Shown one piece after another: positions 182 through 44,393 of a DNA stretch of 64,000 nucleotides; position 1 is the stretch's first letter, and the number at the start of each line of letters is the position of its first letter. The stretch lies in sequence record LT960552.1, one strand, 5' to 3'. The translations under genes were made by a program, and so were the position numbers. Under the pieces are notes generated by a model that saw nothing but the letters and a program-made list of their open reading frames with translations, had not been told where the DNA came from and searched no databases.

Positions 182-210
182 TGAAACAGTATATTTTTTT
201 GTGGTATAAT
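182..210 (+). promoter_or_regulatory. TGAAAC-N17-TATAAT promoter (RNA-gene class), upstream of tRNA-Arg
   Basis: TGAAAC 182-187, TGG-TATAAT ending 210; same spacing in 8 copies. Confidence 0.8.
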
Positions 211-219
211 ATTAGTATT

Positions 220-293
220 CTCCTGTTAGCTCAATTGGATAGAGCAACAAACTTCTAATTTGTAGGTTACTGGTTCGAATCCAGTATGGGAGA
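220..293 (+). tRNA. tRNA-Arg(TCT)
   Basis: Acceptor CTCCTGT/ATGGGAG, anticodon arm ACAAA-CTTCTAA-TTTGT, T-loop TTCGAAT; CCA not encoded. Confidence 0.93.
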
Positions 294-331
294 CAAACAA
301 TATAGCCTAAGCATATGCTTAGGTTTTTTTA

Positions 332-736
332 TTGGTAAAATATATGAAAGAATTAACATATCCAGAAGAAATTTTTAAAGCACTTGAAGATATACATACA
401 AAGTTCATTATACCTAATGGTAAAGTTGATAGATTTGTATCTTGGTATGATTTGGACCGTGATTTAACCGATTATGGATTTGAAATATATCCATATAAAA
501 ATGATGAATCACCAGATCAAATATGTTTGTATGGAAGTATAGGTACTACATATATAACAAATCACACTCTTATTTTTTTTATACATGGTGGCGGAATTCC
601 TCCTTCATATATTGATGATTATATAAATCTTACCGAAGAACAACATTTTCAACTTGGAACAACTACCTTCCTTGCTGGAGTTTTTGAATTTAATGATTTT
701 AAGAAAATACACGAATACTTTAAGAAGATTACATAA
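332..736 (+). CDS. hypothetical protein, EEQHFQ-motif family
   Basis: ORF track; C-terminal TEEQHFQL motif. Confidence 0.7.
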   Translation: MVKYMKELTYPEEIFKALEDIHTKFIIPNGKVDRFVSWYDLDRDLTDYGFEIYPYKNDESPDQICLYGSIGTTYITNHTLIFFIHGGGIPPSYIDDYINLTEEQHFQLGTTTFLAGVFEFNDFKKIHEYFKKIT

Positions 737-1212
737 TGGAAAGAATATTAGTTTTTAATTATGAATATGAAACTCATGTTGAATACCCAGGTGGTCCTGG
801 TTGTCTTGGAAAAATTGAATGGAACGAAATTAGTGAAACGATATTTGAAATATTCGAATTACAAACTGATGGTACATATAGATTAATAACTCAATTTGAC
901 CAAACAGCATATACATTTGATGAAATATGTAACTATCAATACGATTTATATTTGTTAGTACTAACAAATGAGGCATATCATTTTAATAATATTCATGAAG
1001 AAAGAGTTGATCTGTTTGAAGAATTGTGTAAGAATGAACTTAACACTTTAAACAACCGAATGTGGATTGAGTACTGGATACAGTACCATCATACTAGATG
1101 GATAAATGATTATGAAGAAAAACAAGCCAGAAAAGCCGCTGAAGAAGCCGAAAGCCAATCCATTACCGTGGCTTCAACAATGGTTGAAAACGCCTCAGAT
1201 GCCTGTCAGTGA
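736..1212 (+). CDS. hypothetical protein
   Basis: ORF track, coupled to previous stop. Confidence 0.7.
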   Translation: MERILVFNYEYETHVEYPGGPGCLGKIEWNEISETIFEIFELQTDGTYRLITQFDQTAYTFDEICNYQYDLYLLVLTNEAYHFNNIHEERVDLFEELCKNELNTLNNRMWIEYWIQYHHTRWINDYEEKQARKAAEEAESQSITVASTMVENASDACQ

Positions 1213-1372
1213 GCTTCCTGAAGTTAATAAAAATAAAGGGGTTGACAATGAATCCAAACAGTAGTATAGTACATAAATCAACAAGACTTAGTGATGAAAC
1301 AAAATCTCGGCTGAAAGAAATGTTAAATCCATTAAGTAATGTGGTATTTGTCAACTTCAATAGGAAGTGATT

Positions 1373-1567
1373 ATGTCTCATTTTACAAATATTGTTAAAT
1401 TAGATGTTCAGAATGGTTATTGGTACGATGTTTATATGGAAGCAATTAATATTGCTAAAATGCTTGACAAGAACGTTGAATTCTTGTTTAATGGTGTTCA
1501 AATTACATTGAATAAAAATTCAAGTCCTGAATGTTTCGTTAAACAGTATGGAAAAGCGGTAATTTGA
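1373..1567 (+). CDS. hypothetical protein
   Basis: ORF with AGGAAG SD before ATG. Confidence 0.6.
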   Translation: MSHFTNIVKLDVQNGYWYDVYMEAINIAKMLDKNVEFLFNGVQITLNKNSSPECFVKQYGKAVI

Positions 1568-1598
1568 ATTCCAACTGTTTGAAAGTACTAAAAAAACT

Positions 1599-1627
1599 TG
1601 AAACAGTTTCTGAAAGTGTGGTATAAT
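1599..1627 (+). promoter_or_regulatory. TGAAAC-N17-TATAAT promoter upstream of CUA tRNA
   Basis: TGAAAC 1599-1604, TATAAT 1622-1627. Confidence 0.8.
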
Positions 1628-1644
1628 ATACGTATTGAAAGAAT

Positions 1645-1720
1645 GCCTTTGTAGCTCAGTGGTTAGAGCGGGAATCTCTAAAATTCTTTGTCGTCGGTTC
1701 GAGTCCGACCATCGGCACCA
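1645..1720 (+). tRNA. tRNA with CTA anticodon (amber-suppressor type)
   Basis: Anticodon arm GGAAT-CTCTAAA-ATTCT, canonical D and T arms, encoded CCA; two mismatches in acceptor stem. Confidence 0.85.
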
Positions 1721-1757
1721 AAATATAAGTGAGCTTTAGTGGTTCATTGGAAACAAT

Positions 1758-1847
1758 GCGGGTATGAGGATGGCGTACCTCAAACAGACAAAATACGTTC
1801 TGTTGCTGAAAGATGCTAAGATGGTTCAATTCCATCTACCCGCCGCA
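1758..1847 (+). ncRNA. tRNA-like RNA without a canonical anticodon loop
   Basis: Perfect 7-bp acceptor GCGGGTA/TACCCGC, T arm GATGG-TTCAATT-CCATC, stem AACAGA/TCTGTT with 10-nt loop. Confidence 0.6.
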
Positions 1848-1921
1848 CTAAAGGTAGCATCGAAAGATGAGAAAATAACACGAGGCGTCGGAATACGCCT
1901 ACACTTATAATCGTACAATGG

Positions 1922-1989
1922 GGCATATAGCCGATAACACCCTTTGGCTTCCAACGCGGTGTAGGGTGCGGAATATCCCCGCCATGCCA
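1922..1989 (+). pseudogene. possible decayed tRNA
   Basis: GGCAT/ATGCC ends, GCGG/CCGC arm with aberrant loop, CTTCCAA loop without a good stem. Confidence 0.3.
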
Positions 1990-2032
1990 ACTTTAATGTT
2001 GCGTAAGCTAATGCGTCGTAATGGGAGTTAAG

Positions 2033-2182
2033 ATGAAACCTGATTATATTGAATGTTTAGCAAGTGGTGCTGGACATAATTATCAAAAGCAGTCTATACC
2101 ATCAGAGTATATCTGTGGTACTGAAGGTTTAGAACCAACTAAAGTAGTACAATGTCAGTACTGCGGTGAAGAAAAGAAATAA
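2033..2182 (+). CDS. small Cys-containing protein (49 aa), not in ORF track
   Basis: GGAG SD, MKPDYIEC...QCQYCGEEKK. Confidence 0.55.
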   Translation: MKPDYIECLASGAGHNYQKQSIPSEYICGTEGLEPTKVVQCQYCGEEKK

Positions 2183-2188
2183 TTAAAC

Positions 2189-2266
2189 GGCCCTTTACAC
2201 ACTCGCGTGAATGTGCTCTCCTCATAAGAGATGATAAGCTGGGTTAGACTCCCAGAAGGGCCACCA
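2189..2266 (+). tRNA. tRNA(CAT), Ile2-like acceptor, atypical D and T loops
   Basis: GGCCCTT/AAGGGCC-A-CCA, loop CTCATAA, T-loop TTAGACT. Confidence 0.75.
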
Positions 2267-2284
2267 TATTTTAAATGTATTTAA

Positions 2285-2686
2285 ATGAAAATTGAATTAG
2301 AATATCCATATAATCAAGATTGGAAAAGTGGATACCTTGTGGTAAATCCAGAAGGAAGAAAAACCGTAATACTATTCAATAGTGATAAAAATAGATCTTC
2401 AACTGCATATGCAAGATATTTGCTTGCAGTAAAAGAAGGTCGATATTTAACTGAAAATGAACAAGCGGATCACAAAGATACCGATAAAACAAATGATTCT
2501 ATTGATAATCTTCAAATTCTAAGTATTGAAGAACACAAAGAAAAAACTATTTTTGAATTTTCTGGTAAAACATATATTGACTTTATATGTGAAACATGTA
2601 ATAATCCTTTTAAGCGTGAAATTAGGCAAGTAAAGACCTATACAAAATATTGTAGTAGAGAATGCTCATACAAACGAACCAAATAA
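2285..2686 (+). CDS. HNH endonuclease with C-terminal Zn finger
   Basis: DHKDTDKTNDSIDNL HNH motif; CETC...YCSREC. Confidence 0.85.
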   Translation: MKIELEYPYNQDWKSGYLVVNPEGRKTVILFNSDKNRSSTAYARYLLAVKEGRYLTENEQADHKDTDKTNDSIDNLQILSIEEHKEKTIFEFSGKTYIDFICETCNNPFKREIRQVKTYTKYCSRECSYKRTK

Positions 2687-2701
2687 TCGGAGTACTGAAA
2701 C

Positions 2702-3022
2702 ATGAACCAGAACTACATGATGCCGTATCAAGGCAAAACCATCGCTGAAGAATCAATCGAATTGGCACAAACTTTCGTTGATCACTTCAAAGATAAGTTT
2801 GATTTCACTCCGCACATCAATGCGATTGCTGAAGATATTGAAAACTACGTGTTCAGCGGCAATTGGGATCATACCATTGAAGTTGAAGTTGACGGTGTTC
2901 CGTGGATTCGTGTTATTCAAGAAGATGAATACGACCAGCATATGGACGAAGACGACGAAGAAACACCATCTAATGATGATGTTGATTATGTCGGCGGCTA
3001 TTACGTCATGCTGGTGAATTAA
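2702..3022 (+). CDS. acidic hypothetical protein
   Basis: ORF track. Confidence 0.7.
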   Translation: MNQNYMMPYQGKTIAEESIELAQTFVDHFKDKFDFTPHINAIAEDIENYVFSGNWDHTIEVEVDGVPWIRVIQEDEYDQHMDEDDEETPSNDDVDYVGGYYVMLVN

Positions 3023-3024
3023 GA

Positions 3025-3186
3025 TACACGCTACTTGATCGTAGCTAGGGGAATTGTTATCCTCGAATGTAGCCAGTTAATCGCGGTAAAATAAACTCTA
3101 ATGTAAGAGTACTTACATCTTGACGTGGCAAGAATGGGATGGGGCTGGAGAGGAAACTCTGTGAAGGTCACGACCCCCAACCATTA
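3025..3186 (+). ncRNA. structured intergenic region, candidate small ncRNA
   Basis: Hairpins GCTAC/GTAGC, ATGTAAG/CTTACAT, AGAG-GAAA-CTCT, TGGGG/CCCCA. Confidence 0.35.
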
Positions 3187-3358
3187 ACTATTAATTGAGG
3201 TTATATGAATTACTTAAAACATAAGTTACATTTAATATTATTTTCAATATTAGTACTATCAGTATTGGGTATTATTACCAATTCTATTGCAGAAGGTATA
3301 GATCGTATAATTTCTCAAGAAATGGTAGATAATACTTATAAAATTAACAGGTGATAAA

Positions 3359-3604
3359 ATGACACTTGAAGAAATACAAAAAAAGCTTGACAATTCTTTT
3401 CAAAATGGTTATTATATTCGTCGCCCTCACTTTAATGCGGTTGATAATAATTTCGGAAATGTCAATGCTAAAATTGAATGTTATATTTCTCGTACAGGAA
3501 ATGTGTATGACATCCGTTATGAAAATAACAAGATTACATCAGTTGTTAGTACGGTTTTCACATTAATTGAAAAACAAACTGATGATTGGGAGATTGTAAT
3601 ATGA
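3359..3604 (+). CDS. hypothetical protein
   Basis: ORF track. Confidence 0.65.
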   Translation: MTLEEIQKKLDNSFQNGYYIRRPHFNAVDNNFGNVNAKIECYISRTGNVYDIRYENNKITSVVSTVFTLIEKQTDDWEIVI

Positions 3605-3791
3605 TATTAACCCTAATTTTTTTGTGGAGTCTATTAAACGGTATTTCATGTTGGACTATGGCTATTATGGCTATATTAACATCAGAATATCAAATATTTT
3701 GCAATAAGGCTGGGAATGGATTTTTATATACACTAATATGTATTGATTCATATCTACGAATTTTTTCTAATACCCATACAGGACTGTGGTA

Positions 3792-4226
3792 ATGAAAACA
3801 TTAACTACTTCAGATTTTAAAATTCAAGAACTTTCTAAAATGTGTATAGATTCACATCTATTTCATTCATATACATGGACAATGTTTCAATGTTTCAATG
3901 ATGTAATTGATGATGATGAAATAGCAAAAAATTCTGAAATAATCATTTTACAAGATGATTTTGGAAAAAATATTGGTGCTATATTTCATAACGATGAAAA
4001 TCATTATTTTGGTACTAATATTCAAGTATTTGTGTTAGAATCAAAACGTGGTAATGGTTATGGAAAATTTTTGTACAAAGAAATGAATAAATTTCTTATT
4101 AAACAAAAATTTGATGGGACATTGTATGCAGGATCAGGGATCGTTGGATCAATGGATTTTTGGGATAAAATGTCAAAATTACATGAAAGTACTGAATGCT
4201 TAGAACTACATGCTGAGTACTTTTAA
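3792..4226 (+). CDS. GNAT-family acetyltransferase
   Basis: Motif A VFVLESKRGNGYGKFLY. Confidence 0.75.
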   Translation: MKTLTTSDFKIQELSKMCIDSHLFHSYTWTMFQCFNDVIDDDEIAKNSEIIILQDDFGKNIGAIFHNDENHYFGTNIQVFVLESKRGNGYGKFLYKEMNKFLIKQKFDGTLYAGSGIVGSMDFWDKMSKLHESTECLELHAEYF

Positions 4227-4237
4227 TATATAATATT

Positions 4238-4322
4238 GCGTTTGTGGTGAAATTGGTAACCACAGGGGACTTAAAATCCCCCGCCCGTATAGGGCTTGTC
4301 GGTTCGAGTCCGACCAGACGCA
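4238..4322 (+). tRNA. tRNA-Leu(TAA)
   Basis: GGGGA-CTTAAAA-TCCCC, long variable arm, T-loop TTCGAGT. Confidence 0.95.
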
Positions 4323-4454
4323 CAAAAATTTTCAAGGCGATATGAGCTATCCACATAATATAATTAATGTATATGGTACTGAATAACCGTATTAAAAACT
4401 GCATAGTAATAATATTAAAGTTACGTATTATCGAAATGATGAAAAGGAACAATT

Positions 4455-4757
4455 ATGAAAAAGATCTTTGTAGTACCAAATGGTGAAAGTAATTTTGGTG
4501 TTAGTATGGTAGCACTTACCGAAGATGGTGATTGTATCGCTGGTCATCTAAGTAGTAATACTACATGGGGCCGCCATGACATGGGCATTGGTTCTGATTG
4601 GAAGCACGATCTTTATGATAAAGAATATGGTGCTGGTGAATGGGAACTGTTGTATGCTGATGATATCGTTATGAATTCACCTGAATTTTTACTCGCAGTT
4701 CAGCGTAATCATGAAAAAGCAGAACTCGCAGAAACTGAAGATGAAGAAACTGAGTAA
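4455..4757 (+). CDS. hypothetical protein
   Basis: ORF with AAGGA SD. Confidence 0.7.
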   Translation: MKKIFVVPNGESNFGVSMVALTEDGDCIAGHLSSNTTWGRHDMGIGSDWKHDLYDKEYGAGEWELLYADDIVMNSPEFLLAVQRNHEKAELAETEDEETE

Positions 4758-4814
4758 GTGTTCTGTTAACGGAATCTAATCTTTTATGTAATCAATAAAT
4801 TATAAAGGTAAAAT

Positions 4815-5048
4815 ATGAAAATTATCGAAGATGCAGTACTTGCAAAAATGAACCTACAGCGTTTGAAAACTCATCGTACTTCAGTACTGGCTAGCATCAA
4901 CAAAGAGTTTTTTGATTATACTAAAGATGACGACCAAATTCGTTTTCCGGTAAATCATGATACTCAAGAATATTTCGATGCAATTGAGTATCGTAATAAG
5001 GTTAATAAACATTACAATGCTGCTCGTACAGCAGTTAAGGTGAAATAA
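4815..5048 (+). CDS. hypothetical protein
   Basis: ORF track. Confidence 0.65.
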   Translation: MKIIEDAVLAKMNLQRLKTHRTSVLASINKEFFDYTKDDDQIRFPVNHDTQEYFDAIEYRNKVNKHYNAARTAVKVK

Positions 5049-5266
5049 TGTGGATTATATGTGATTCATTTGATAAAATACCAGTAGGTACTTGGCTTGG
5101 AACTGCATTAGAAACAGATCAAGATAACAATAAAGTACTGGTAAAGATTGAAGTGATCACAGCATCTACATTTACTTTATGTGTTGTCGATGGTGCTAAC
5201 GCATCTGACCGTGATTACTTGAAGCTTCTTGCATATTGCGAACCTCCTAAATTATTCGGAGAATAA
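5048..5266 (+). CDS. hypothetical protein
   Basis: ORF track, coupled. Confidence 0.65.
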   Translation: MWIICDSFDKIPVGTWLGTALETDQDNNKVLVKIEVITASTFTLCVVDGANASDRDYLKLLAYCEPPKLFGE

Positions 5267-5267
5267 T

Positions 5268-5732
5268 ATGATTGGTAGTACTGTAATATTTGAATATCAT
5301 GAAATGTGTTATCCTTACCATATTGCATGTTTTCATACCCATAAACAACTGACCAATGAAGAACTTGAAGCAGAGATGTGTAAAGTACTTGGTTGGGATG
5401 AAATGGATGATTGGCACCGCCATTCTTTAACTTTTATTGATCATAACCGTCTACGGGGATTATCAATTTTGGGTGAAGAAATTGATCCTGATGTTCATCG
5501 TGTGTTGAAACGATTCTTTCCTGAATCGTTAAAAGGTATAGCTGATGATGAATCATTCGGTAATTTTAGTTATCAGTACTATGATGCTAAAGCTAATGAA
5601 GTAGTTTGGATGAATTTGTATCAAGATGAACTAACTGAACGTTTACGTGAATTACAAAAAGCATCTGCTGCTGCATTTCAAGAACGCCGTGCACGTGAAA
5701 AAGAGGATATGAGAAATGTCAATAAAAGTTGA
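5268..5732 (+). CDS. hypothetical protein
   Basis: ATG after GGAG SD. Confidence 0.65.
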   Translation: MIGSTVIFEYHEMCYPYHIACFHTHKQLTNEELEAEMCKVLGWDEMDDWHRHSLTFIDHNRLRGLSILGEEIDPDVHRVLKRFFPESLKGIADDESFGNFSYQYYDAKANEVVWMNLYQDELTERLRELQKASAAAFQERRAREKEDMRNVNKS

Positions 5733-5912
5733 TCCAGAAACACAAAAAGCTGTAGATCCTGAGAGTATTGGTAAAGATTCATGGAAACGCTTTTTGTTAG
5801 CAGTACTTATAGTTTCTGCTGCAATCATCACTTATAAGATTTTGTAAAAAGTACTTGACATATAGAAAATTTTATAGTACTATATGTCGAGTTGAATTAA
5901 TTCATAGGTATT

Positions 5913-6143
5913 TTGATGAAAATTTTATTTTGTTGGTTAATTGGTGCAATGTCTGTTATTTTAGGTATGATGTTTACGGCTTGGAGAACGGCAACATTGC
6001 CACAAGGTAATTTGTATTTTTTATCTCCAGATGACCGGTTGTTAGTTAGTTTATGGACTGGTGGATTGTACTGTATGTGGTTTATAATTGTATCATTTTG
6101 TTTATGGTTAGTTTTTAAAGGTATTGATTATGCATATGAATAA
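5913..6143 (+). CDS. small membrane protein
   Basis: Two hydrophobic segments; sigma70-like promoter TTGACA-N17-TACTAT upstream. Confidence 0.6.
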   Translation: MMKILFCWLIGAMSVILGMMFTAWRTATLPQGNLYFLSPDDRLLVSLWTGGLYCMWFIIVSFCLWLVFKGIDYAYE

Positions 6144-6543
6144 AGTTCTTAATACTTGGATCGAAAATGTAAAAACTTATCCACCATCTGAAATCTTTTT
6201 TGAAAAGTACGGAAAAGATGCCAAAGCAGAAGAACGATTAAAAGTAATTTGCGAAGAGATGTATCGCTTTGTATTTCCAGAAGGAAAACCTAATTTATTG
6301 AGTAATCTTGGTTCTTCATATCGTGATTTTGAAGTTGCTTATATCATGGGTTTTGATGGTATGAAGCCTGAATATATTACCAAAGTTAAAGACCAATTTT
6401 TGATTGATGTTAAAGAAACAATCAAAGCGATGGATGATATGTGTAAAAAGGATCAAATCTTACAGCAATATTATACGCAATGGAAACTGAAATTTTCAGA
6501 TATTAATTCAATTGTTTATGATATGACTAAGGACTATGTATGA
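6136..6543 (+). CDS. hypothetical protein
   Basis: ORF track. Confidence 0.65.
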   Translation: MNKVLNTWIENVKTYPPSEIFFEKYGKDAKAEERLKVICEEMYRFVFPEGKPNLLSNLGSSYRDFEVAYIMGFDGMKPEYITKVKDQFLIDVKETIKAMDDMCKKDQILQQYYTQWKLKFSDINSIVYDMTKDYV

Positions 6544-6722
6544 AAATTTTCACCTTAGAGATGTCATATTATGGTTGCGTAGTGGTAATAGATGAAACAA
6601 TTGAATCAGCATGGATTCGTATTAAAAATGAACATCCAGTTGCTGTAAATTATAAAATATCTGATGTTAAAGAAAATGATATTGGAATTGATTTTATTTT
6701 CTCAAATTTTGGAGATTTATAA
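6540..6722 (+). CDS. hypothetical protein
   Basis: ORF track, coupled. Confidence 0.6.
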   Translation: MKIFTLEMSYYGCVVVIDETIESAWIRIKNEHPVAVNYKISDVKENDIGIDFIFSNFGDL

Positions 6723-7036
6723 TGAAAAAGTTTAATTATACAACTAAAAATATTTTAGTATCACCGATAATTGAATTAGTTGATCGTGCGATAGATTATG
6801 ATTATAATAATATCAGTTATTGGAATGAAGTTCGTGAAAGAATTGTCGATAATATACTAGAGGGTGTTTCATTAATTTGGGTGGAATATTTAACATTTGT
6901 ATTGACAATTGAAATATTAGATCCAGAATTAAATTATTCAGATAAACTTGATAAAGCTATTGACGATTTAGCTGGATACTGTTATGATTACGAATGTAAT
7001 ATTCGTATCGGTGGTGAAATAGTAAAGAGTGATTAA
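6722..7036 (+). CDS. hypothetical protein
   Basis: ORF track, coupled. Confidence 0.65.
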   Translation: MKKFNYTTKNILVSPIIELVDRAIDYDYNNISYWNEVRERIVDNILEGVSLIWVEYLTFVLTIEILDPELNYSDKLDKAIDDLAGYCYDYECNIRIGGEIVKSD

Positions 7037-7042
7037 AAATAC

Positions 7043-7156
7043 GCAGTGATCGTCTAGAGGCTTAGGACACGAAAAGCGATTCTTGATTAAGAATCTTACG
7101 GCATCCACAACTTTCATTCAACGAACGTAACGCAGGTTCGAATCCTGCTCACTGCA
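7043..7156 (+). ncRNA. CAGCA-module element 1: Glu-type tRNA body with anticodon arm replaced by module
   Basis: GCAGTGA/TCACTGC acceptor, D arm GTCTAGAGGCTTAGGAC, T arm GCAGG-TTCGAAT-CCTGC; insert GATTCTT..AAGAATC-TTACGGCAT. Confidence 0.8.
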
Positions 7157-7177
7157 CAAAAATTAAAAAGGTATTAT

Positions 7178-7552: not shown

Positions 7553-7553
7553 T

Positions 7554-7856: not shown

Positions 7857-7865
7857 AAGTAATTT

Positions 7866-7991: not shown

Positions 7992-8146
7992 CAAAATTGG
8001 TAAAAAAGCTCTGCGGTGGGACATTATATTCATCCACATGTTATTAGTTATTTTAAACAATCTGGTGAATATTTCAATGAATTGGATAAAACCGAACCAA
8101 GTAAATCAGATGTTAGTGGTGAACCAACAATAACTGGAAAATAAAA

Positions 8147-14724: not shown

Positions 14725-14753
14725 TGAAACAACTAAAAAAATTGTGGTATAAT
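14725..14753 (+). promoter_or_regulatory. TGAAAC-N17-TATAAT promoter upstream of module element 4
   Basis: TGAAAC 14725-14730, TATAAT 14748-14753. Confidence 0.8.
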
Positions 14754-14907: not shown

Positions 14908-14936
14908 TGAAACAAATCAAAAATTTGTGGTATAAT
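14908..14936 (+). promoter_or_regulatory. TGAAAC-N17-TATAAT promoter
   Basis: TGAAAC 14908-14913, TATAAT 14931-14936. Confidence 0.8.
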
Positions 14937-19092: not shown

Positions 19093-19121
19093 TGAAACGA
19101 TTAAAAAATTTGTGGTATAAT
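19093..19121 (+). promoter_or_regulatory. TGAAAC-N17-TATAAT promoter upstream of tRNA-Asn
   Basis: TGAAAC 19093-19098, TATAAT 19116-19121. Confidence 0.8.
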
Positions 19122-20572: not shown

Positions 20573-20646
20573 GTTTTTATTTGGAAGTCTCATGAAAGAT
20601 AATTTTTATGAAGATTTAAGATTTAGATATATTGAAGTACATGAAT

Positions 20647-20676
20647 TTGACGTTATAGCACTGAACGTGCTATAAT
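20647..20676 (+). promoter_or_regulatory. sigma70-like promoter with internal 9-bp inverted repeat
   Basis: TTGACG-N17-TATAAT; TTATAGCAC-N5-GTGCTATAA. Confidence 0.7.
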
Positions 20677-20680
20677 AGCT

Positions 20681-22421: not shown

Positions 22422-22847
22422 ATGAATGTATTTGAAACGTGTTTTTTATATGCAAGTAAGGGTGATTCAAATAAAACTATTAGAAGTACAAATGACGATA
22501 AAATTCTTTTCTCTTATAAAATACTAACTGAGTTTGATTCTGTAATAGAGCAAAATGTATGTATATTCATGATTGTAGTATATGTTGAAGATGATACTTT
22601 TATTTTTTCATTTGGTATATCTGAAGACTATCCTGATATTGGTATTTCAATTATGAAAGTACAAGGTAATATATCATTGCATTCCAGTGATGTATGCAAC
22701 GTAGAAGATTTGGAAGCACGTTTATTCCAAATAGAAACTATTGTAGATGTACATGATTTAGATACTACGATGATAGATAAAATGTATAAGCTTCGTGAAA
22801 TATATTTGAAGAAAAAAGATGAAACGGTGCTGAATAATCTGGTATAA
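22422..22847 (+). CDS. hypothetical protein, divergent EEQHFQ-motif family
   Basis: EARLFQIETI. Confidence 0.6.
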   Translation: MNVFETCFLYASKGDSNKTIRSTNDDKILFSYKILTEFDSVIEQNVCIFMIVVYVEDDTFIFSFGISEDYPDIGISIMKVQGNISLHSSDVCNVEDLEARLFQIETIVDVHDLDTTMIDKMYKLREIYLKKKDETVLNNLV

Positions 22848-22848
22848 T
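22820..22848 (+). promoter_or_regulatory. TGAAAC-N17-TATAAT promoter upstream of tRNA-Pro
   Basis: TGAAAC 22820-22825, TATAAT 22843-22848. Confidence 0.8.
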
Positions 22849-22860: not shown

Positions 22861-22934
22861 CAGGGTGTAGGCAAATTGGTTTGTCACCTGCTTTGGGAGT
22901 AGGATTAATGCTGGTTCGAGTCCAGTCACCCTGA
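22861..22934 (+). tRNA. tRNA-Pro(TGG)
   Basis: CCTGC-TTTGGGA-GTAGG; CAGGGTG/CACCCTG. Confidence 0.93.
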
Positions 22935-22943
22935 CAAATATTA

Positions 22944-23018
22944 CGGAGTGTGGGCTAATTGGCTAAGCCGCCTGTTTTGGGAACAGGAAAATTGTAGGTT
23001 CGAGTCCTACCATTCCGA
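22944..23018 (+). tRNA. tRNA-Pro(TGG), second copy
   Basis: CCTGT-TTTGGGA-ACAGG; CGGAGTG/CATTCCG. Confidence 0.93.
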
Positions 23019-23024
23019 CAAATT

Positions 23025-23098
23025 GCTTGTTTAACTCAGTTGGTTAGAGTGCCATCTTTACACGGTGGAAGTCATTAGTTCAAATCTAATAACAAGCA
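23025..23098 (+). tRNA. tRNA-Val(TAC)
   Basis: CCATC-TTTACAC-GGTGG; GCTTGTT/AACAAGC. Confidence 0.93.
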
Positions 23099-23154
23099 CA
23101 AACTGAACTATTAAACTAAATATATTAAATTATAATAGTTTAGGAGTTCAGAAA

Positions 23155-31267: not shown

Positions 31268-31296
31268 TGAAACAGCAGAAAAAAATGTGGTATAAT
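31268..31296 (+). promoter_or_regulatory. TGAAAC-N17-TATAAT promoter upstream of tRNA-Met
   Basis: TGAAAC 31268-31273, TATAAT 31291-31296. Confidence 0.8.
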
Positions 31297-36331: not shown

Positions 36332-36370
36332 TATCAATGGGGAGAAATCCCCATATTTTAGGATAATAAA

Positions 36371-36805: not shown

Positions 36806-36814
36806 GGATATATT

Positions 36815-37243: not shown

Positions 37244-37310
37244 AAAATTGACACGTGTTAAACGGTATGATATAGTACTAGTATAAATTCAATTACAAAT
37301 GGATAATTAA

Positions 37311-37556
37311 ATGGAAATTTCAAAATTAGTTTCTATTATTAAAGAAAAAGAATTAGAGATTCAGGAACAGCGTAATACAATTAAACAACTATATGAGGAT
37401 AACATGGCACGTTTTTCTGTGTCTAAAAATATTATCACTCCAGAAATTAATGAAAATTATAAAAAAATTGATAGTACTTTTAGTGCTAAAGCTAAACTTG
37501 AAGCAGGTGTTCGTAGTTTACAAAAACAAATTCTTTGTAATTTATTGGAGGAATAA
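37311..37556 (+). CDS. coiled-coil hypothetical protein
   Basis: ORF track. Confidence 0.65.
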   Translation: MEISKLVSIIKEKELEIQEQRNTIKQLYEDNMARFSVSKNIITPEINENYKKIDSTFSAKAKLEAGVRSLQKQILCNLLEE

Positions 37557-37558
37557 TC

Positions 37559-38182
37559 ATGCCAAGGTATAGTGCAGCAAAAACAGAAGTAGCCCGTAAG
37601 TTAAGTACTAGTAAGTATCGTTACTCTAGTATCTTTCCTACTGCATTATCACAACTAGACCATATCTTTTTTGTGATTGGCAATGGAATGAGTTTTGAAC
37701 AAAAAGAAGGTGTATATTTCCAAAATTATTGTATTGAAATGGCAAAAAGTGAGAGAAATATCAAGATTGAACGTTGTCATGAACAAATGAGAAAATTGCG
37801 TGATATAGTTGGGGATGCTGGTTCACGCTTTGATAACATATATCTAGAAGAAATTAAAGAACTTGAACAAGATTATGTTCAAATGCCAGTCAGTTATTAT
37901 TTTGATGCAGATGCTATGGCGGCTGAGCAAATTTCTTATAATGAAACTGCACAGTACAAACTTACTCCATACCCTGTTTGTGAGTACTCAATTATTACGC
38001 ATGTTAACCATAAAAGCAATAAAACTACTTTAGCATTAGCAATTGCTTGTACTAAAGGCTGGTTGAAAGTTGTTCAGCATGAACTTAATGTAGAACAAAA
38101 CGAAGAACAGAAAACAATAATTGAGAAATGGATTGTTTTCTTTAATGAAACTATTGAACGTTTGGAGAATAAAAATGCTTAA
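37559..38182 (+). CDS. hypothetical protein
   Basis: GGAGG SD. Confidence 0.7.
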   Translation: MPRYSAAKTEVARKLSTSKYRYSSIFPTALSQLDHIFFVIGNGMSFEQKEGVYFQNYCIEMAKSERNIKIERCHEQMRKLRDIVGDAGSRFDNIYLEEIKELEQDYVQMPVSYYFDADAMAAEQISYNETAQYKLTPYPVCEYSIITHVNHKSNKTTLALAIACTKGWLKVVQHELNVEQNEEQKTIIEKWIVFFNETIERLENKNA

Positions 38183-38297
38183 ACCATTAATCCTGTTAAT
38201 CGTAGTACTGGCAATCGGTGTTGGTATCGGTTATAATGTTGGACAAAAAGCTCCATCTGCTGGTGATTGCTTAAACTCACTAATTGGGAAATAACAA

Positions 38298-38777
38298 ATG
38301 AAAATCAGTACTAATTCGTGGCATTACAAAATGAATGAGTATGTATATGATATGTTGAATAAAAATATATCAAACTCATTATGTGGTTATTTTTGGCAAA
38401 CAGTGTTTGCTCCTATCATAACATTAACAATTGTTCTTTTAGGGTTAGTTGTTATTTCCATACTAAGTTGGGGAGCATTTTATCTTGTAGGTGCACTATT
38501 CTCCAATTTTTTAGTTTGGATCAACGTTTTACCAGAATCGTTCCAGTTACTAAAAAAAGTATTCAACTGGCGGTTCATTCCAATGTCAATACTTTTTGAT
38601 GTATTAGTAGTTGGTGTATTTTATAGTAAGCACAAATATTCTTCTTATAAAGAACGTAAAATTGAAGAAGCTAAAGAAAAAGGTATACAGATTGATTCTA
38701 AACCATTATTGGTGGTTGAGTATATCAAAGCTAAGAAACGTAAAATTTGTCCATTGATTGAATTTACTAAAGATTAA
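38298..38777 (+). CDS. membrane protein
   Basis: ISTNSWHY..SLCGYFW then TM segments. Confidence 0.7.
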   Translation: MKISTNSWHYKMNEYVYDMLNKNISNSLCGYFWQTVFAPIITLTIVLLGLVVISILSWGAFYLVGALFSNFLVWINVLPESFQLLKKVFNWRFIPMSILFDVLVVGVFYSKHKYSSYKERKIEEAKEKGIQIDSKPLLVVEYIKAKKRKICPLIEFTKD

Positions 38778-38843
38778 TATCAAAATTATAGTACTAGAAA
38801 TTAGTCTAGTACTTTTTAAGTTAATATAAAACAGGGGGTCATT

Positions 38844-39185
38844 ATGGCTCTATATAAAAAAGGTGATGAAGTTTGTTTTTTATATGAAAATAAAATTCTA
38901 ACTGGTATCATTAAAACCACTGGTAAATTGTATGGAATAACCATACCATCCGGTGAAGTACTATACGCTAGCTTAAAATATATAGCAGCCATCGATGCTA
39001 AATTTAGTATCGTTGAATCAGATCCGATTTTTTCAAATCATAAAAATCTAAGAATTGATTTTACTACATATCTATCAAGAAATAAAACATGGGAAAATTG
39101 GGTTAATAAAGAATCTTGGATACAAGAAGCATTTGATCCAATTAATTTATGTCTTAAAGTTACAATATATGGATTGGAGATTTAA
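38844..39185 (+). CDS. hypothetical protein
   Basis: ORF track. Confidence 0.65.
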   Translation: MALYKKGDEVCFLYENKILTGIIKTTGKLYGITIPSGEVLYASLKYIAAIDAKFSIVESDPIFSNHKNLRIDFTTYLSRNKTWENWVNKESWIQEAFDPINLCLKVTIYGLEI

Positions 39186-39186
39186 C

Positions 39187-39735
39187 ATGTTTAAAAAAGG
39201 TGATTGGGTTGAATTAGTAGATGTTGAAGGTTTTAAAAACTCACATAATCAAAACAAAGAACTAATTGAAGCTATGAAAGGATTTCCAATTCAATTAACT
39301 AATTTTACTATAAATGGTGATGTTGACCAACTTAAAACACATGATGGTAACACTTCTCTTATTGGTATATATGAAAGAGAATTGATTAGGTATTTTAAAT
39401 TAATAAAGTCACATAGTGAATTTGGTTCGTTTAAATTAATTATTACTTATATCGAAAATGGTAAAACCATTGAAGAAGAAGGGGTTAATTATATCCAACT
39501 TAGTAATGAACAGGTATCGTATACGTTTAATCGAAAAAAACTTGGATTCATTACATACAAAGGTGAAATTACCTTAAAAATTGACGATCTTAAACAAATT
39601 ACTATAAGTACACCACAATATGAACGAGTGTTTCATATTGAAAATGGTAAAGTTATTCGTGAACATATAATGTATGATAATGAACGTACATTTAGTTCAT
39701 TTTCTTTACAAGGCAACAACGGTAAAATGAACTAA
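39187..39735 (+). CDS. hypothetical protein
   Basis: GGAG SD. Confidence 0.65.
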   Translation: MFKKGDWVELVDVEGFKNSHNQNKELIEAMKGFPIQLTNFTINGDVDQLKTHDGNTSLIGIYERELIRYFKLIKSHSEFGSFKLIITYIENGKTIEEEGVNYIQLSNEQVSYTFNRKKLGFITYKGEITLKIDDLKQITISTPQYERVFHIENGKVIREHIMYDNERTFSSFSLQGNNGKMN

Positions 39736-39747
39736 AAGGTTTATAAT

Positions 39748-40017
39748 ATGGTATTCATAAAAGTACAGAATACATTTGAACATAAGTTTATAAAAATTGA
39801 TAAATGGAATACTCCAGTACTTACAATTAGTATTGATAGTGCATATAAATTTGAATCATTAAATTCTGCTATTGAATTCATTAGTAAATTTAATTTAGTA
39901 AAAACATCATATGTTCATCAAATATATGATTGTAGTACTGATAAATTACTTGCAACTTGTACATTAGTCCGAGATAATACCGGTAAATTTATCGTTGGTG
40001 TTCAATTACAAAAATAA
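39748..40017 (+). CDS. hypothetical protein
   Basis: ORF track. Confidence 0.6.
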   Translation: MVFIKVQNTFEHKFIKIDKWNTPVLTISIDSAYKFESLNSAIEFISKFNLVKTSYVHQIYDCSTDKLLATCTLVRDNTGKFIVGVQLQK

Positions 40018-40234
40018 AAAAAATCACTTGACATGTTTGGTCTAAGCTGGCATAATTAAGTCTCTAAAGAAGAACATTTCGATTAACTAAAATGAGGATT
40101 GAACGAAAATGTAACAGTTCAACTATAACTTTAATAAATCAAGAAATATCAAACTAGTTCATGTCATGTTGCAGTACTGGAAGCATAATTTTGGCGTATC
40201 ATCACATTATATAAGACAAAAAATCTTGTATAAT

Positions 40235-40565
40235 GGGGTCACGAGGGGATTATCAGCAGAACTTTGTATGAATTGAAATTCGACCACTTACAACAGGTGG
40301 ATTAAGCTTCAAGATAGCTTTCCCTAAAAATGATAGGGTTCCAGTAAAAAAATCTAGGCTGGAGAGAATTTCAAACAAATATTTGTGGTACAACGTAGGT
40401 ATCACACTCCTTTCGAGGATGGCTTGAGAAGCGATATTTGTAGAACAATCCAAACATTGTTCATAATATACTTGCACTACTACGAAGTTTAATATTATAA
40501 TCAGTTTGGTGATAAATGATGTTAAGCGAATAATCAACAGGTGGCTGAAATATCAGCCACCAACT
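40235..40565 (+). ncRNA. structured non-coding RNA (~330 nt), unknown family
   Basis: Long-range pairs, multi-hairpin junction, terminal 9-bp hairpin GGTGGCTGA/TCAGCCACC. Confidence 0.65.
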
Positions 40566-40592
40566 TTAAAATTTTAATTTAGAGTAATTTTT

Positions 40593-40973
40593 ATGAATGA
40601 TGAACGATCAGATAAACTTTTTTTGATAGCTTTATTAATTATGGTTTTATCAATGATAGCATTTGCAGGTTACGGAATTTGGACAACTAAAGTTGAACTG
40701 GCTTCCAGAACAAATACTTACCATAGAACTGCAATTGTTGTTGACGTTTACAATCATTTGAGTTATAGTGAACGTCATGGGAAACGGTCAGAGCAGTTTA
40801 CTCCCATCAAGATAAAAGAAGGTAGTGAGTATACAGAATTTGCATTTGAAGGTAAGCCCACAGTCGGAAATCTACTATTTAAAGATTGCTGGACTGATGC
40901 AAAAGGGTTATCATGGTGTAAATCAGAATGGTCATACACATTTGAGTATCAAAATTTAAGTGAGGATAATTAA
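40593..40973 (+). CDS. membrane-anchored hypothetical protein
   Basis: N-terminal TM. Confidence 0.65.
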   Translation: MNDERSDKLFLIALLIMVLSMIAFAGYGIWTTKVELASRTNTYHRTAIVVDVYNHLSYSERHGKRSEQFTPIKIKEGSEYTEFAFEGKPTVGNLLFKDCWTDAKGLSWCKSEWSYTFEYQNLSEDN

Positions 40974-41140
40974 TATGAAAGAATATATTGTTGAATACTT
41001 TATGCCAAAAAGTTCAGTCCCAATGGCAACACGCACATTTGCACATTCAGAAGCCAATGCACGTGCAGCAGCAAAGAAAGAAAAAGGGAATGACATTATT
41101 ATTCGCAGTACTCGCTTAGTATAATAAGCGTTAAAAATTT

Positions 41141-41165
41141 AAAAGCCAGTTCATTCTGGCTTTTT
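41141..41165 (+). terminator. intrinsic terminator
   Basis: AAAAGCCAG-TTCATT-CTGGCTTTTT. Confidence 0.75.
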
Positions 41166-41209
41166 CTATTGGAAAAAATCAATTGTTGCATTTTTGTACG
41201 GAGATAAAT

Positions 41210-42202
41210 GTGAGCATTAAAAAACTAAACTTAGATGAAATTCAGGATGAGATTCTAGACGAGTGCTTTGAAAATGATGATAAAACACTTGACTCATTAG
41301 TAATCGATGAAGATGATTTCGATAATGAAAGTACTGAAGAAGTTATCGATAATGGTTTAACAATGGATAAAATTAAATCTAAAGTTAAATCAGATCAATA
41401 CGTCAGTAATGAAGATTTAGTTCGTAAAGTTCAAAACAATATTGATGTTGAACGTTCTAAAGAACTTCTTATCATGTTTAATAGTGGTTTGGTTTACAAT
41501 GAAGCAAAAAACTGTACTTGTAACATTCCATTTCAAGATAAAGTTCAATACGGTTTCGAAGGTCTAATCAAAGCCATTCATGGTTTTAATACTAATTTTA
41601 AAACACTTTTTAGTACTTATGCTACAACTGCAATCCGTCAGCATATGTATCGTAATGGAAATAACGATGTGCGTATGGTCGCATTACCTGAGCATCTTTC
41701 TATGTTCAATATCCGCATCCAAGGCTTCATAGAGAGGTCAATGAATGATGCTGGTGGCTACCCTACTCATGAGCAAATCGCCGCTGGTACTGGCATTGAC
41801 ATACGTTCAGTTAAGCGTATAATGAACTACAACAGCAACACATTCAGCATTGATACCCCTATGGTACGTGGTGGTGATGAGGGGTCACAGCAGACTCTTA
41901 AAGATATGATTGCAGGGGATAGTGCGGATTACTTTGTTGATGAACGTTGTGTCAGTAAAGATTTTCTAAGTACTATGGATGAAATATTGAATGAACTACT
42001 TGAACATGAGCGAGTACTTATCGGCTTAGTTCATGGATTAGATGGATATCGTACACATACTTTCGATGAAATTATTAGTACGGGATACATTGATAGTAAT
42101 GGTTCATATGTTACTTCAAAGGCTACACTATCCCGCCGTTATAACAATATAATGGATAAAGTGCGTCGAATTGTGGAACGTAAAGAAATAAGTTTTGATT
42201 AA
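41210..42202 (+). CDS. RNA polymerase sigma70-family factor
   Basis: Region 2 (QYGFEGLIKAIHGF..FSTYATTAIRQ), region 3 (PTHEQIA), region 4 HTH; GTG start after GGAG. Confidence 0.88.
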   Translation: MSIKKLNLDEIQDEILDECFENDDKTLDSLVIDEDDFDNESTEEVIDNGLTMDKIKSKVKSDQYVSNEDLVRKVQNNIDVERSKELLIMFNSGLVYNEAKNCTCNIPFQDKVQYGFEGLIKAIHGFNTNFKTLFSTYATTAIRQHMYRNGNNDVRMVALPEHLSMFNIRIQGFIERSMNDAGGYPTHEQIAAGTGIDIRSVKRIMNYNSNTFSIDTPMVRGGDEGSQQTLKDMIAGDSADYFVDERCVSKDFLSTMDEILNELLEHERVLIGLVHGLDGYRTHTFDEIISTGYIDSNGSYVTSKATLSRRYNNIMDKVRRIVERKEISFD

Positions 42203-42213
42203 GAGGGAAAATT

Positions 42214-42705
42214 ATGAGCCGTCGTGGTAAAATCAGTACTATTCTAAATTATACAATTGATGAATTAGTTCAAATGATGATGTCAAATGATATTCTTAAA
42301 GAAAACATTCGGTTATATCAAAAGAACTACAACATGAATGAAATTACCAAACGTCATGCTATGGCGGCATATAAAGCTTTCAAAAAATATAAGAAACAAG
42401 TACGAGATGAAGAAAAAATCAAACGTATAAAATTAAACAAAGAACTACGTATAATGAAATACAACGAGGATAATCCATTATCATTTCGTTATCGTACAGT
42501 TGAAGAAATTTATGTTCTTATTCGTGATAACCAATCATGTTTTAATTTAGCATGGAACTATGTATCACCATGTAAAACAAAAACAAAATTGGAACCGTTG
42601 TTAATAGAGCGTACTCGCAAAGCATTAGTACGCTATTATAAAAAGAAAGACCGTAACAATCCAAAACTTAAAAAATTATTGGATCGAGATCCAGCTAACA
42701 TATAA
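42214..42705 (+). CDS. basic hypothetical protein
   Basis: ORF track. Confidence 0.7.
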   Translation: MSRRGKISTILNYTIDELVQMMMSNDILKENIRLYQKNYNMNEITKRHAMAAYKAFKKYKKQVRDEEKIKRIKLNKELRIMKYNEDNPLSFRYRTVEEIYVLIRDNQSCFNLAWNYVSPCKTKTKLEPLLIERTRKALVRYYKKKDRNNPKLKKLLDRDPANI

Positions 42706-42710
42706 TAAAA

Positions 42711-42743
42711 GGGTTGACTTCGGTCAGCCCTTTTTGCTATACT
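42711..42743 (+). promoter_or_regulatory. terminator hairpin overlapping a sigma70-like promoter
   Basis: GGGTTGAC-TTCG-GTCAGCCC-TTTTT with TTGACT in 5' arm and TGc-TATACT downstream. Confidence 0.7.
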
Positions 42744-42773
42744 CCCTGTACTGACAGCAAAGAGGGTAAGACA

Positions 42774-43013
42774 ATGAATAACGACAATGAAATCACCATT
42801 AAGTTGAAAAAATTTGATGGCACTGAATCATCATGTGACACTTTGTACAGTAATTCTTTGTATGATGATTCATTTAAAGTACGAACAATATATGATGATA
42901 TTGTTAATGTTAATTTTGGATGGGAGCAAGGGCGTGGGAATAACTATCGCTTTTATGTCAACGATACGAAATATTATCTACCAGATGAAATTACGCATAT
43001 AGAAGTAAAATAA
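42774..43013 (+). CDS. hypothetical protein
   Basis: GAGGG SD. Confidence 0.6.
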   Translation: MNNDNEITIKLKKFDGTESSCDTLYSNSLYDDSFKVRTIYDDIVNVNFGWEQGRGNNYRFYVNDTKYYLPDEITHIEVK

Positions 43014-43040
43014 AATGTTCTAATTGGGAGTGCTGGAAGC

Positions 43041-43226
43041 ATGAATTCAAATCGCAAGTTCACAATAGCCTTTTGGGGAGGTCAAGCAATAGGTGCAGTA
43101 GGCGTTGCGATGGGCTGTTATTTCATGATGGAGTTCAACAACTTTTGGTACTTCGTCGGGACAGCACTTGCTGGTTTACTGTGTGCTTTTATTTTCATTA
43201 ACTTTATGTACAGGAAGAAAAAATGA
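43041..43226 (+). CDS. small membrane protein
   Basis: Two TM segments. Confidence 0.6.
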   Translation: MNSNRKFTIAFWGGQAIGAVGVAMGCYFMMEFNNFWYFVGTALAGLLCAFIFINFMYRKKK

Positions 43227-43480
43227 CTATCGTTCATGAGTACGCTGTGGTAGACAATACTACTGAACAAGTGATTGGTAAGTACGTTGGTACAAAACCA
43301 TCAAAGATGCAGAACATTCCTTATACTTTGATGAAAACTACCAGTACTGGTAGTACCACACAACAAGGTACTGCATTCTTAACTAAAGCCCAAAAGTTTT
43401 GGAATGTAGTATCTGATCCACTGTATCTGGTATCACCAGAACAAAATCGCACATCATTAAAGTTGGAAGGGTTCATCTAA
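43223..43480 (+). CDS. hypothetical protein
   Basis: Coupled ORF. Confidence 0.65.
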   Translation: MTIVHEYAVVDNTTEQVIGKYVGTKPSKMQNIPYTLMKTTSTGSTTQQGTAFLTKAQKFWNVVSDPLYLVSPEQNRTSLKLEGFI

Positions 43481-43740
43481 TGGCAATTGGATTTGGTTCT
43501 TGTGATAACTTTCAGGAAACAATTCAGGCTACAGTGGATAATGGCATTGACTTTGCTCGTTCACAATTACCTACTGGTGAATCTGAAAAGTTATGTTTAG
43601 ACTGTGGAAATGAAATACCACAAAAACGTAGGGAAGTACTAAAAGGTGTTAAGTACTGTGTGAACTGTCAAAGTACTAAAGATACTAAGATCAGTTCAAT
43701 GTATAATCGTCGTGGATCTAAAGATTCACAATTGAGGTAA
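43480..43740 (+). CDS. TraR/DksA-family C4 zinc-finger protein (YbiI-like)
   Basis: CLDCGNEIPQKRREVLKGVKYCVNCQ. Confidence 0.88.
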   Translation: MAIGFGSCDNFQETIQATVDNGIDFARSQLPTGESEKLCLDCGNEIPQKRREVLKGVKYCVNCQSTKDTKISSMYNRRGSKDSQLR

Positions 43741-43743
43741 TAA

Positions 43744-44016
43744 ATGACACATTTAAATAAAAGCAATCTTGTTGAAAACCATTCAAATATTTTGGAATTT
43801 GAATATAATGGTTGTACTTTCTACCGTAATTCAAAACTTCGTCGTTTCCTGAATGAACTATTTGGTGCTACATTAGTAGCAGTTTACAGTACTAATAAAG
43901 ATTCAGACACAAATCATGGGTTAGATTGGAGTGGTGAGGATATAGTAACTGTAACTGCAAATGGTGTTGTTTCACATCTTGGTAACTCTGAGTGGGCACA
44001 TTTTACTAAACTTTAA
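43744..44016 (+). CDS. hypothetical protein
   Basis: GAGG SD. Confidence 0.65.
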   Translation: MTHLNKSNLVENHSNILEFEYNGCTFYRNSKLRRFLNELFGATLVAVYSTNKDSDTNHGLDWSGEDIVTVTANGVVSHLGNSEWAHFTKL

Positions 44017-44035
44017 TAAATTTATAGGTTCTTAT

Positions 44036-44347
44036 ATGTTAGAAGGTTTCACTAAAGTTGGTTCTGGTCATAGTCATAATAATGTACTACCAAAAGAAAG
44101 TGGTGCATACAATGTGGTAATTATATCACGTGATGGACTTCCTGTTATTCAAGTAATGTACTTTGATAAAAATGCAGCAGATCGTTTTGAACGTGATCGT
44201 CAATGGATATATTTTAAAATTTCAGAGTATGGCTACTTCGACCATCAGCGTACCAATGGAGAATCCATTGATGCGTGGAAGAAAATTGAAGGTATTAATC
44301 TTAAAATTATTCCTGAAAAAATTGAAATTACATTCAACAGTATTTAA
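44036..44347 (+). CDS. hypothetical protein
   Basis: ORF track. Confidence 0.6.
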   Translation: MLEGFTKVGSGHSHNNVLPKESGAYNVVIISRDGLPVIQVMYFDKNAADRFERDRQWIYFKISEYGYFDHQRTNGESIDAWKKIEGINLKIIPEKIEITFNSI

Positions 44348-44364
44348 ATTACTGATGAATAATA

Positions 44365-44393
44365 TGAAACAGATTTAAAAAATCTGGTATAAT
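44365..44393 (+). promoter_or_regulatory. TGAAAC-N17-TATAAT promoter upstream of large ncRNA
   Basis: TGAAAC 44365-44370, TATAAT 44388-44393. Confidence 0.8.

Follow-up and report, generated by a model that had tools for sequence, protein, structure and literature searches.

A lineage-specific promoter class ahead of stable RNA and protein genes in Yersinia phage fHe-Yen9-03, with a phage sigma factor as candidate reader

We analyzed a recurring promoter sequence in the final 64 kb of Yersinia phage fHe-Yen9-03, an Eneladusvirus and Rak2/GAP32-like jumbo myovirus with a genome of 352,596 bp. The stretch of 64,000 nucleotides, hereafter the window, is identical in sequence to LT960552.1 288597-352596, and positions are given in window coordinates unless the record is named. 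It holds exactly eight matches to TGAAAC-N17-TATAAT (at 182, 1599, 14725, 14908, 19093, 22820, 31268 and 44365), all on the + strand and all carrying TGGTATAAT. As an earlier sequence-only reading of the window had reported, the eight copies have identical spacing and a TGG before the −10, and each directly precedes a tRNA, a module RNA or a non-coding region, which that reading put at 570 nt and we put at about 600 nt; the depositors of LT960552.1 already annotate all eight as −35/−10 signals. Shuffling the window gave a mean of 0.08 matches and a maximum of one. Allowing one or two mismatches gave 36 matches against 30.8 expected, and since relaxed matching thus brings in chance-level matches only, the set is discrete.

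Promoters and RNA units in the window

The eight class promoters, together with a canonical-type promoter that precedes tRNA-Asp, are arranged as follows.

182-210, + strand: class promoter (TGAAAC-N14-TGGTATAAT), heads tRNA-Arg(TCT) at 220-294, 10 nt downstream
1599-1627, + strand: class promoter, heads the amber-suppressor tRNA(CTA) at 1645-1720, 18 nt downstream
14725-14753, + strand: class promoter, heads a tRNA-like module RNA
14908-14936, + strand: class promoter, heads one or more module RNAs, then tRNA-Glu (15194), tRNA-Ser (15615) and a tRNA-Ser-like gene (15727)
19093-19121, + strand: class promoter, heads tRNA-Asn (19145, 24 nt downstream), then tRNA-Gln (19313)
20624-20680, + strand: canonical-type TTGACG-N17-TGCTATAAT promoter, with tRNA-Asp (20681) immediately behind it
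22820-22848, + strand: class promoter overlapping the 3' end of g462, an open reading frame (ORF), heads tRNA-Pro, tRNA-Pro and tRNA-Val (22861-23099), 13 nt downstream
31268-31296, + strand: class promoter, heads tRNA-Met (31312, 16 nt downstream) and tRNA-Ala (31410)
44365-44393, + strand: class promoter, heads an ornate non-coding RNA (ncRNA) of about 600 nt (about 44394-45040)

The distance from the end of the −10 to the tRNA 5' end is 10-24 nt at sites 182, 1599, 19093, 22820 and 31268, and no annotated ORF falls between 14620 and 15885, the interval that contains the sites at 14725 and 14908. Class-headed units hold 12 of the 28 tRNA-like genes in the window. A clear terminator was seen only at the tRNA-Arg(TCT) unit (a hairpin plus T7 at about 306-331), and most RNA units run on into ORFs. 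The ORF g456 starts 19 nt past tRNA-Gln and, because no terminator lies in this gap, is probably co-transcribed with the tRNA-Asn/tRNA-Gln unit. Behind the amber-suppressor tRNA(CTA) follows a 312-nt ORF-free stretch (1721-2032) that contains a tRNA-like T-arm (GGTTCAATTCC) and for this reason is probably another module RNA of the same unit. Canonical TTGAC(A/T)-N16-18-TAYAAT sites stand before protein genes in the window, in agreement with the TTGAC(A/T) type that the sequence-only reading had placed there.

The promoter class across the genome

We defined the class from an unbiased census of every TGnTATAAT in the genome. The strict form TGAAAC-N17-TATAAT occurs in 22 forward copies in the whole of LT960552.1, and the wider class, TG(A/G)AA(C/T)-N14-TGnTATAAT, at 37 sites where about 0.1 would be expected by chance; all 37 lie on the + strand, co-directional with the genes, and none on the other strand. 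Scanning the genome with a position weight matrix yielded just one further, weaker site, which marks the class as discrete. In its members an A-rich stretch lies upstream of the −35 word; a 14-nt spacer, again A-rich, leads to a perfect TGnTATAAT, and an AT-rich discriminator, ATA(T/C/A), follows. Hexamer positions G2, A4, A5 and C6 are near-invariant across the 37 sites, and the word is TGRAAC at 34 of them. A distinct, sharply defined class, different from the TTGACA class, is supported.

RNA genes lie behind 14 of the 37 sites (about 9% expected, p about 2e-6), comprising seven tRNA units, two module RNAs and five copies of the ornate ncRNA. Protein genes lie behind the other 23, ten of which are among the 22 strict sites, and include those for a gp32-like single-stranded DNA-binding protein (SSB), DNA primase, a topoisomerase II subunit, a PD-(D/E)XK nuclease, a NadR/NUDIX enzyme and a ClpB-like ATPase. 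The gp55-like late sigma gene, whose product matches phrog_12791 (E 6e-154), is also headed by a class promoter. The sequence-only reading had described the motif as found only in front of RNA genes and had proposed a genome-wide motif scan as its check; the scan found these protein-gene sites and refutes the exclusivity.

The model of the sequence-only reading is a dedicated stable-RNA regulon, marked by TGAAAC-N17-TGGTATAAT and kept apart from all protein-gene promoters. It would suit the window, where all eight sites head RNA genes, as well as the region beyond 260 kb, where 10 of 11 class sites do so, and strict TGAAAC does lean towards RNA genes when set against the G/T variants (RNA/protein targets 12/10 vs 2/13, Fisher p = 0.016, the sites being non-independent). 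However, ten strict sites head protein genes; TGGAAC also heads RNA genes, namely two ornate-RNA copies in fHe-Yen9-03 and tRNA-Met and a suppressor tRNA in relatives; and hexamer position 3 flips between A and G in orthologous promoters, those of tRNAs included. Most tRNAs moreover lack the motif, the promoter of tRNA-Asp is canonical, and RNA units read through into ORFs. We regard such a regulon as very improbable. The separate stable-RNA regulon of the sequence-only reading survives in so far as the class is unlike TTGACA and enriched for RNA genes, and falls in so far as it is shared with protein genes. A rule by which A or G at hexamer position 3 would tell RNA from protein genes was rejected as weak (p = 0.016) and contradicted by orthologs; because the base flips between them, the position carries no such meaning.

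The five copies of the ornate ncRNA lie near 27.7, 93.7, 174.7, 259.1 and 333.0 kb of LT960552.1. Every copy has a class promoter to itself, with the word TGAAAC in three cases and TGGAAC in two, and blastn found further copies in GAP32, XbC2, Munch and 121Q. Rfam returned only tRNAs for the window at the gathering threshold, and no match at E <= 1 for 39900-45100, which covers the ornate ncRNA and a second ORF-free stretch, 40057-40592. Wastewater RNA-seq runs hold only 5-13% of ornate-RNA words; short fragments with 95-99% identity occur in contigs from such runs, in which flanking genes were not seen.

Two further observations concern class sites outside the window. Sites in tandem at record positions 201399 and 201487, 88 bp apart, precede the gp32-like SSB gene, and the pair is kept in BF, CBB, GAP32, XbC2 and pEa_SNUABM_12. 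The site at record position 244091 reads TGAAATGGTA...TG(G/A)TATAAT, and its TGAAAT word is kept even in EJP2, 121Q and Hallingskeid, where it is an exception, the other class promoters of these phages using TGRGAY.

The −35 word across Rak2-like phages

The motif class is already known, in silico, from Pectobacterium phage CBB and Cronobacter phage GAP32. Buttimer et al. 2017 (PMC5259590) described a "divergent RpoD-like promoter" in CBB, noted also for GAP32 with reference to Abbasifar et al. 2014, in which a classic −10 TATAAT is combined with a −35 TGAAACG that replaces TTGACA. They listed 18 copies, mostly ahead of DNA-synthesis ORFs and the gp55-like gene, and their Table S6 displays the same 29-nt architecture with TGGAAC, TGGAAT and TGAAAT variants. 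That set came from an in silico MEME search confined to the 100 bp preceding ORFs, which left RNA genes unsampled. The CBB/GAP32 class and that of fHe-Yen9-03 share −35 words, the 17 bp to TATAAT, the A-rich spacer and TGnTATAAT, they occupy syntenic positions, and both stand ahead of DNA-synthesis genes and the gp55-like sigma gene. The publication lacks the count of 37, the tRNA and ncRNA targets, the switching of the word by lineage and the assignment of a reader. The papers on RaK2, EJP2 and fEgEco12 contain no promoter analysis, and the PA5oct transcriptome paper gives TTGAC/TATAATA motifs only; neither the targeting of RNA genes nor the lineage-specific −35 code seems to have been reported before, and both are modest additions.

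We compared the −35 word in 10 Rak2-like genomes, representing about six lineages, alongside the sigma70-type protein g503 encoded at 41210 of the window, homologs of which, between 99% and 29% identical, occur throughout the Rak2-like clade. Class sites number 34-37, at syntenic positions, in the phages whose sigma is at least 71% identical to g503 (BF, pEa_SNUABM_12, CBB, GAP32 and XbC2). CBB, GAP32 and BF have 37 each, with matching coordinates and orthologous genes downstream; GAP32 and the Xanthomonas phage XbC2 have 33 TGRAAC sites each, and in both the class heads the same tRNAs (Ser, Leu, Arg or suppressor, Asn, Pro, Met) and ornate RNAs. Where the sigma is at most 45% identical, 0-3 TGRAAC sites were found, and the extended −10 architecture is kept with a different −35 word.

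Munch: TGGGAC/TGAGAC (TGRGAC-N15), the word one bp further upstream, 26 class sites
EJP2: TGAGAC/T (TGRGAY-N14), 17 class sites
Hallingskeid: TGGGAT (TGRGAY-N14), 27 class sites
121Q: TG(G/A)GAC (TGRGAY-N14), 11 class sites
RaK2: TTGAAC, 6 class sites

The resulting word-by-genome matrix is almost diagonal, with the −35 word following phage lineage and not host. Two Erwinia phages, for example, differ completely: pEa_SNUABM_12 has 34 TGRAAC and 0 TGRGAY sites, Hallingskeid 0 and 27. Orthologous promoters of the gp32, topoisomerase II, nuclease, NadR and ClpB genes change word in concert, and the local word is found at RNA genes as well: in Munch at tRNA-Ser, tRNA-Arg and the ornate RNAs, in RaK2 at tRNA-Ser, and in 121Q at the ornate RNAs. 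All compared genomes contain canonical TTGACA-N17-TATAAT, in 2-21 copies. The hosts are mostly Enterobacterales, and their sigma70 region 4.2 is essentially invariant. Because region 4.2 of the host and the host-type promoter class both stay the same, the concerted change points to a phage-encoded reader of the −35, and we consider it likely, from this comparison of sequences, that a phage-encoded factor reads the class word. In Vibrio phage 2.275.O a distant sigma is present and the class is not recognizable.

This pattern bears directly on whether host sigma70 alone could suffice, by using strong extended −10 promoters with a UP-like A-tract in which TGAAAC is merely an inherited, degenerate −35 (nTGAAA at 18 bp). 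The class does have a canonical sigma70 −10 (TATAAT), extended −10 promoters are able to work without a −35, a consensus scan reads window position 44364 as ATGAAA-N18-TATAAT (10/12, with TG), and the CBB authors themselves chose the label "RpoD-like" (PMC5259590). In the 17-bp register, however, only two of six bases match TTGACA, and in the 18-bp register, where nTGAAA fits at 4-5 of 6, the base aligned to sigma70 T-35 is not conserved among class sites and the invariant C stays unexplained. A dispensable −35 would drift, yet G2, A4, A5 and C6 are held across the 37 sites. More than 25 orthologous promoters per genome have changed the same base together while the TTGACA class stayed fixed, and the lineages that switched share host families and, once, a host genus. 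Host sigma70 acting alone is accordingly hard to credit, and we rate it as decidedly unlikely. The discriminator, being AT-rich, also differs from the GC-rich one of stringently controlled stable-RNA promoters.

Two features of genome organization emerged from the same comparison. In MT939486.1 (pEa_SNUABM_12) the orthologs of the sites at 22820, 31268 and 44365 are reverse-strand sites close to the end of the record, which suggests that the segment holding them is inverted in this assembly relative to other Eneladusviruses. The palindrome AGTACT is about 8.5-fold over-represented in fHe-Yen9-03 (1012 copies vs 118 expected from base composition) and densest in the first 20 kb of the genome; GAP32, XbC2, Munch, EJP2, Hallingskeid, 121Q and RaK2 show an excess of similar size, and Vibrio phage 2.275.O shows none (81 vs 115).

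The phage sigma factor as candidate reader

The fHe-Yen9-03 genome encodes one sigma70-type gene, g503, and one gp55-like gene. The features that surround g503 in the window are the following.

40028-40056, + strand: canonical TTGACA-N17-(TG)CATAAT promoter preceded by an A-rich stretch; no strong promoter lies closer on the upstream side of g503
41210-42202, + strand: g503, RpoD-like sigma of 330 aa, candidate reader of the class (Pfam, PDB, structural model)
43480-43740, + strand: g508, DksA/TraR-type zinc-finger protein (PF01258, E 2e-9), a possible secondary-channel modulator of RNA polymerase (RNAP)

In Pfam, g503 matches Sigma70_r2 with 30 bits (cut-off 24) and Sigma70_r3 with 24 bits, just under the cut-off of 25.3. 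PDB sequences of SigA, RpoD and RpoS match it down to E 1e-16, with the alignment stopping at residue 289, the exact start of the region 4.2 helix-turn-helix (HTH), and the C-terminal 90 residues alone gave no significant Pfam or PDB sequence match. An AlphaFold model built with 40 database homologs shows a confident four-helix C-terminal domain (pLDDT 80-91), in which a 12-residue beta-hairpin (residues 292-303) replaces the tight HTH turn and is followed by a long final helix (304-325). Foldseek aligns the model over 270-310 columns with full-length sigmaS and sigmaA in holoenzymes. By these comparisons, g503 is predicted to have the full sigma2-3-4 fold with an atypical region 4.

We took the E. 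coli numbering of the recognition helix from the SigA alignments, so the residue assignments are presumptive. In the TGRAAC group this helix reads VTSKATLSRRYN and departs from sigma70 at every classical −35-contact position: on the presumed numbering, S, K, L and S stand in for R584, E585, R588 and Q589. In other lineages the second of the four contact positions is R (or H) and the fourth is H, and the helix types sort by lineage. Two metagenomic sigmas, 46-47% identical and with a helix of the group-A type, adjoin perfect TGAAAC-N14-TGGTATAAT sites, one of which lies directly after the sigma gene, as in the window. The class element itself occupies the canonical −35 position, at a spacing of 17 bp. 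As a separate observation, the hairpin of Munch-type sigmas has two additional residues, and the −35 word of their promoters lies 1 bp further from the −10.

From what we observed, namely the class, its targets, their conservation and the lineage-specific change of word, we infer a timing and a reader. The eight sites belong to a phage-specific second promoter class of Eneladusvirus/Mimasvirus jumbo phages. This class may serve a middle programme read by g503, and to this reading, made from sequence, we assign a probability of roughly 0.5. Host sigma70 would act first, on the early arm in which g503 lies, by reading its canonical TTGACA promoters. The phage sigma would then join the host core RNAP and read the class promoters, its conserved region 2/3 recognizing TGnTATAAT and its diverged region 4.2 recognizing TGRAAC. 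This would switch on the replication/nucleotide-metabolism module, the stable RNAs and the gp55-like late sigma, which in turn would drive late genes. The cascade fits the locus because g503 has the canonical promoter at 40028 and no class promoter upstream. Among the readers that the sequence-only reading had put forward, the phage factor fares best, with the sigma at 41210 as the strongest candidate, whereas host sigma70 alone fits less well.

Several points weigh against g503 as the reader of a middle programme. The −10 is a perfect sigma70 consensus and stays TGnTATAAT in 121Q and RaK2 despite a changed sigma, whose region 2.4 has gone from IRQ to IYM; a constant −10 beside a varying phage region 2.4 fits reading by host sigma70. 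The W433/W434 pair is missing from g503, and helix and word correlate imperfectly, since RaK2 has the R/H helix type with an AAC-ending word. Two further contigs with the group-A type of helix (P0047 and P0040) have no class promoter within 10 kb, although we regard these as uninformative. The comparison rests on about six lineages, which makes shared ancestry a confounder and phylogenetic coincidence possible. A search turned up no RNA-seq of fHe-Yen9-03, and wastewater RNA-seq gave six short contigs inside the ornate-RNA body, with no start sites and with one run that is probably DNA.

The constancy of the −10 would be accommodated by sigma appropriation. On this view recognition of the extended −10 would fall to host sigma70, and the −35 word would be read by another DNA-binding protein of the phage, acting much as MotA/AsiA do in T4, be it as activator, as adaptor or as timing repressor; the RpoD-like sigma would serve other promoters. 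A lineage-specific word suits any phage-encoded reader equally, and the early arm offers many small ORFs of unknown function along with the TraR/DksA-type protein near the sigma gene. But the element lies at −35 with 17-bp spacing and not at −30 like a MotA box, and no promoter class would be left for the RpoD-like sigma, early promoters being of the TTGACA type and late ones TATAAATA-like for gp55 (PMC5259590). Searches for the AsiA and MotA C-terminal domains (PF09010, PF09158) came back empty, although the controls were silent too. On balance, we think an arrangement of this kind unlikely, but a serious rival all the same.

The class can be set beside several known systems. T4 middle promoters likewise join a host-type −10 to a phage-specific upstream element and serve replication genes and tRNAs, but they use a MotA box with a sigma70 −10 and AsiA remodelling of region 4, whereas here the element is a −35 and there is no TGCTT box. 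Bacillus phage SPO1 gp28 middle promoters and T4 gp55 late promoters are the work of phage sigma cascades. The likeness would be a phage sigma that redirects host core RNAP to a private word and drives the next temporal class, here with the class preceding a gp55-like sigma gene; the predicted difference is that Rak2-like promoters keep a perfect extended −10 of the host type, the −35 word being their one private element. The −35 TGAAAC, with its AAC core, is also identical to that of the Bacillus subtilis sigmaW promoter, read by an extracytoplasmic function (ECF) factor (PMC5758882), but ECF promoters have a CGTA-like −10 (CGT/TCTGA-type) where the class has TATAAT. We considered and rejected g503 as an ECF factor, as it has a region 3 and a group-1/2-like region 2, in contrast to the two-domain sigma2-sigma4 arrangement of ECF sigmas.

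Behind the canonical promoter at 40028 lies the ORF-free stretch of 535 nt (40057-40592), with a hairpin at 40540-40561 just upstream of g501; judging from its sequence, it may be a further ncRNA or a long leader.

Our analysis corrects the scope of the class from 18 to 37 sites, tRNA, module-RNA and ornate-ncRNA units included, and assigns the stable RNAs to one programme with the replication genes and the late sigma. The concerted change of word, with the host-type class fixed, provides comparative evidence for a phage-encoded reader, and the class gives an easy means of annotating temporal classes in Rak2-like jumbo phages, a group that includes several phage-therapy or biocontrol candidates. 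Tentatively, and without quite calling it probable, we suggest that Rak2-like phages may carry a private, evolvable −35 code, in which a remodelled sigma region 4.2, its HTH interrupted by the hairpin, is paired with retained host-type −10 recognition. Its specificity would have shifted several times (TGRAAC, TGRGAC, TGGGAT, TTGAAC), with 25-37 promoters per genome co-evolving and with stable RNAs, replication genes and the late sigma forming one regulon. If true, these phages would represent a natural series of orthogonal sigma/promoter pairs operating on one host core RNAP, usable to probe the specificity determinants of region 4.2.

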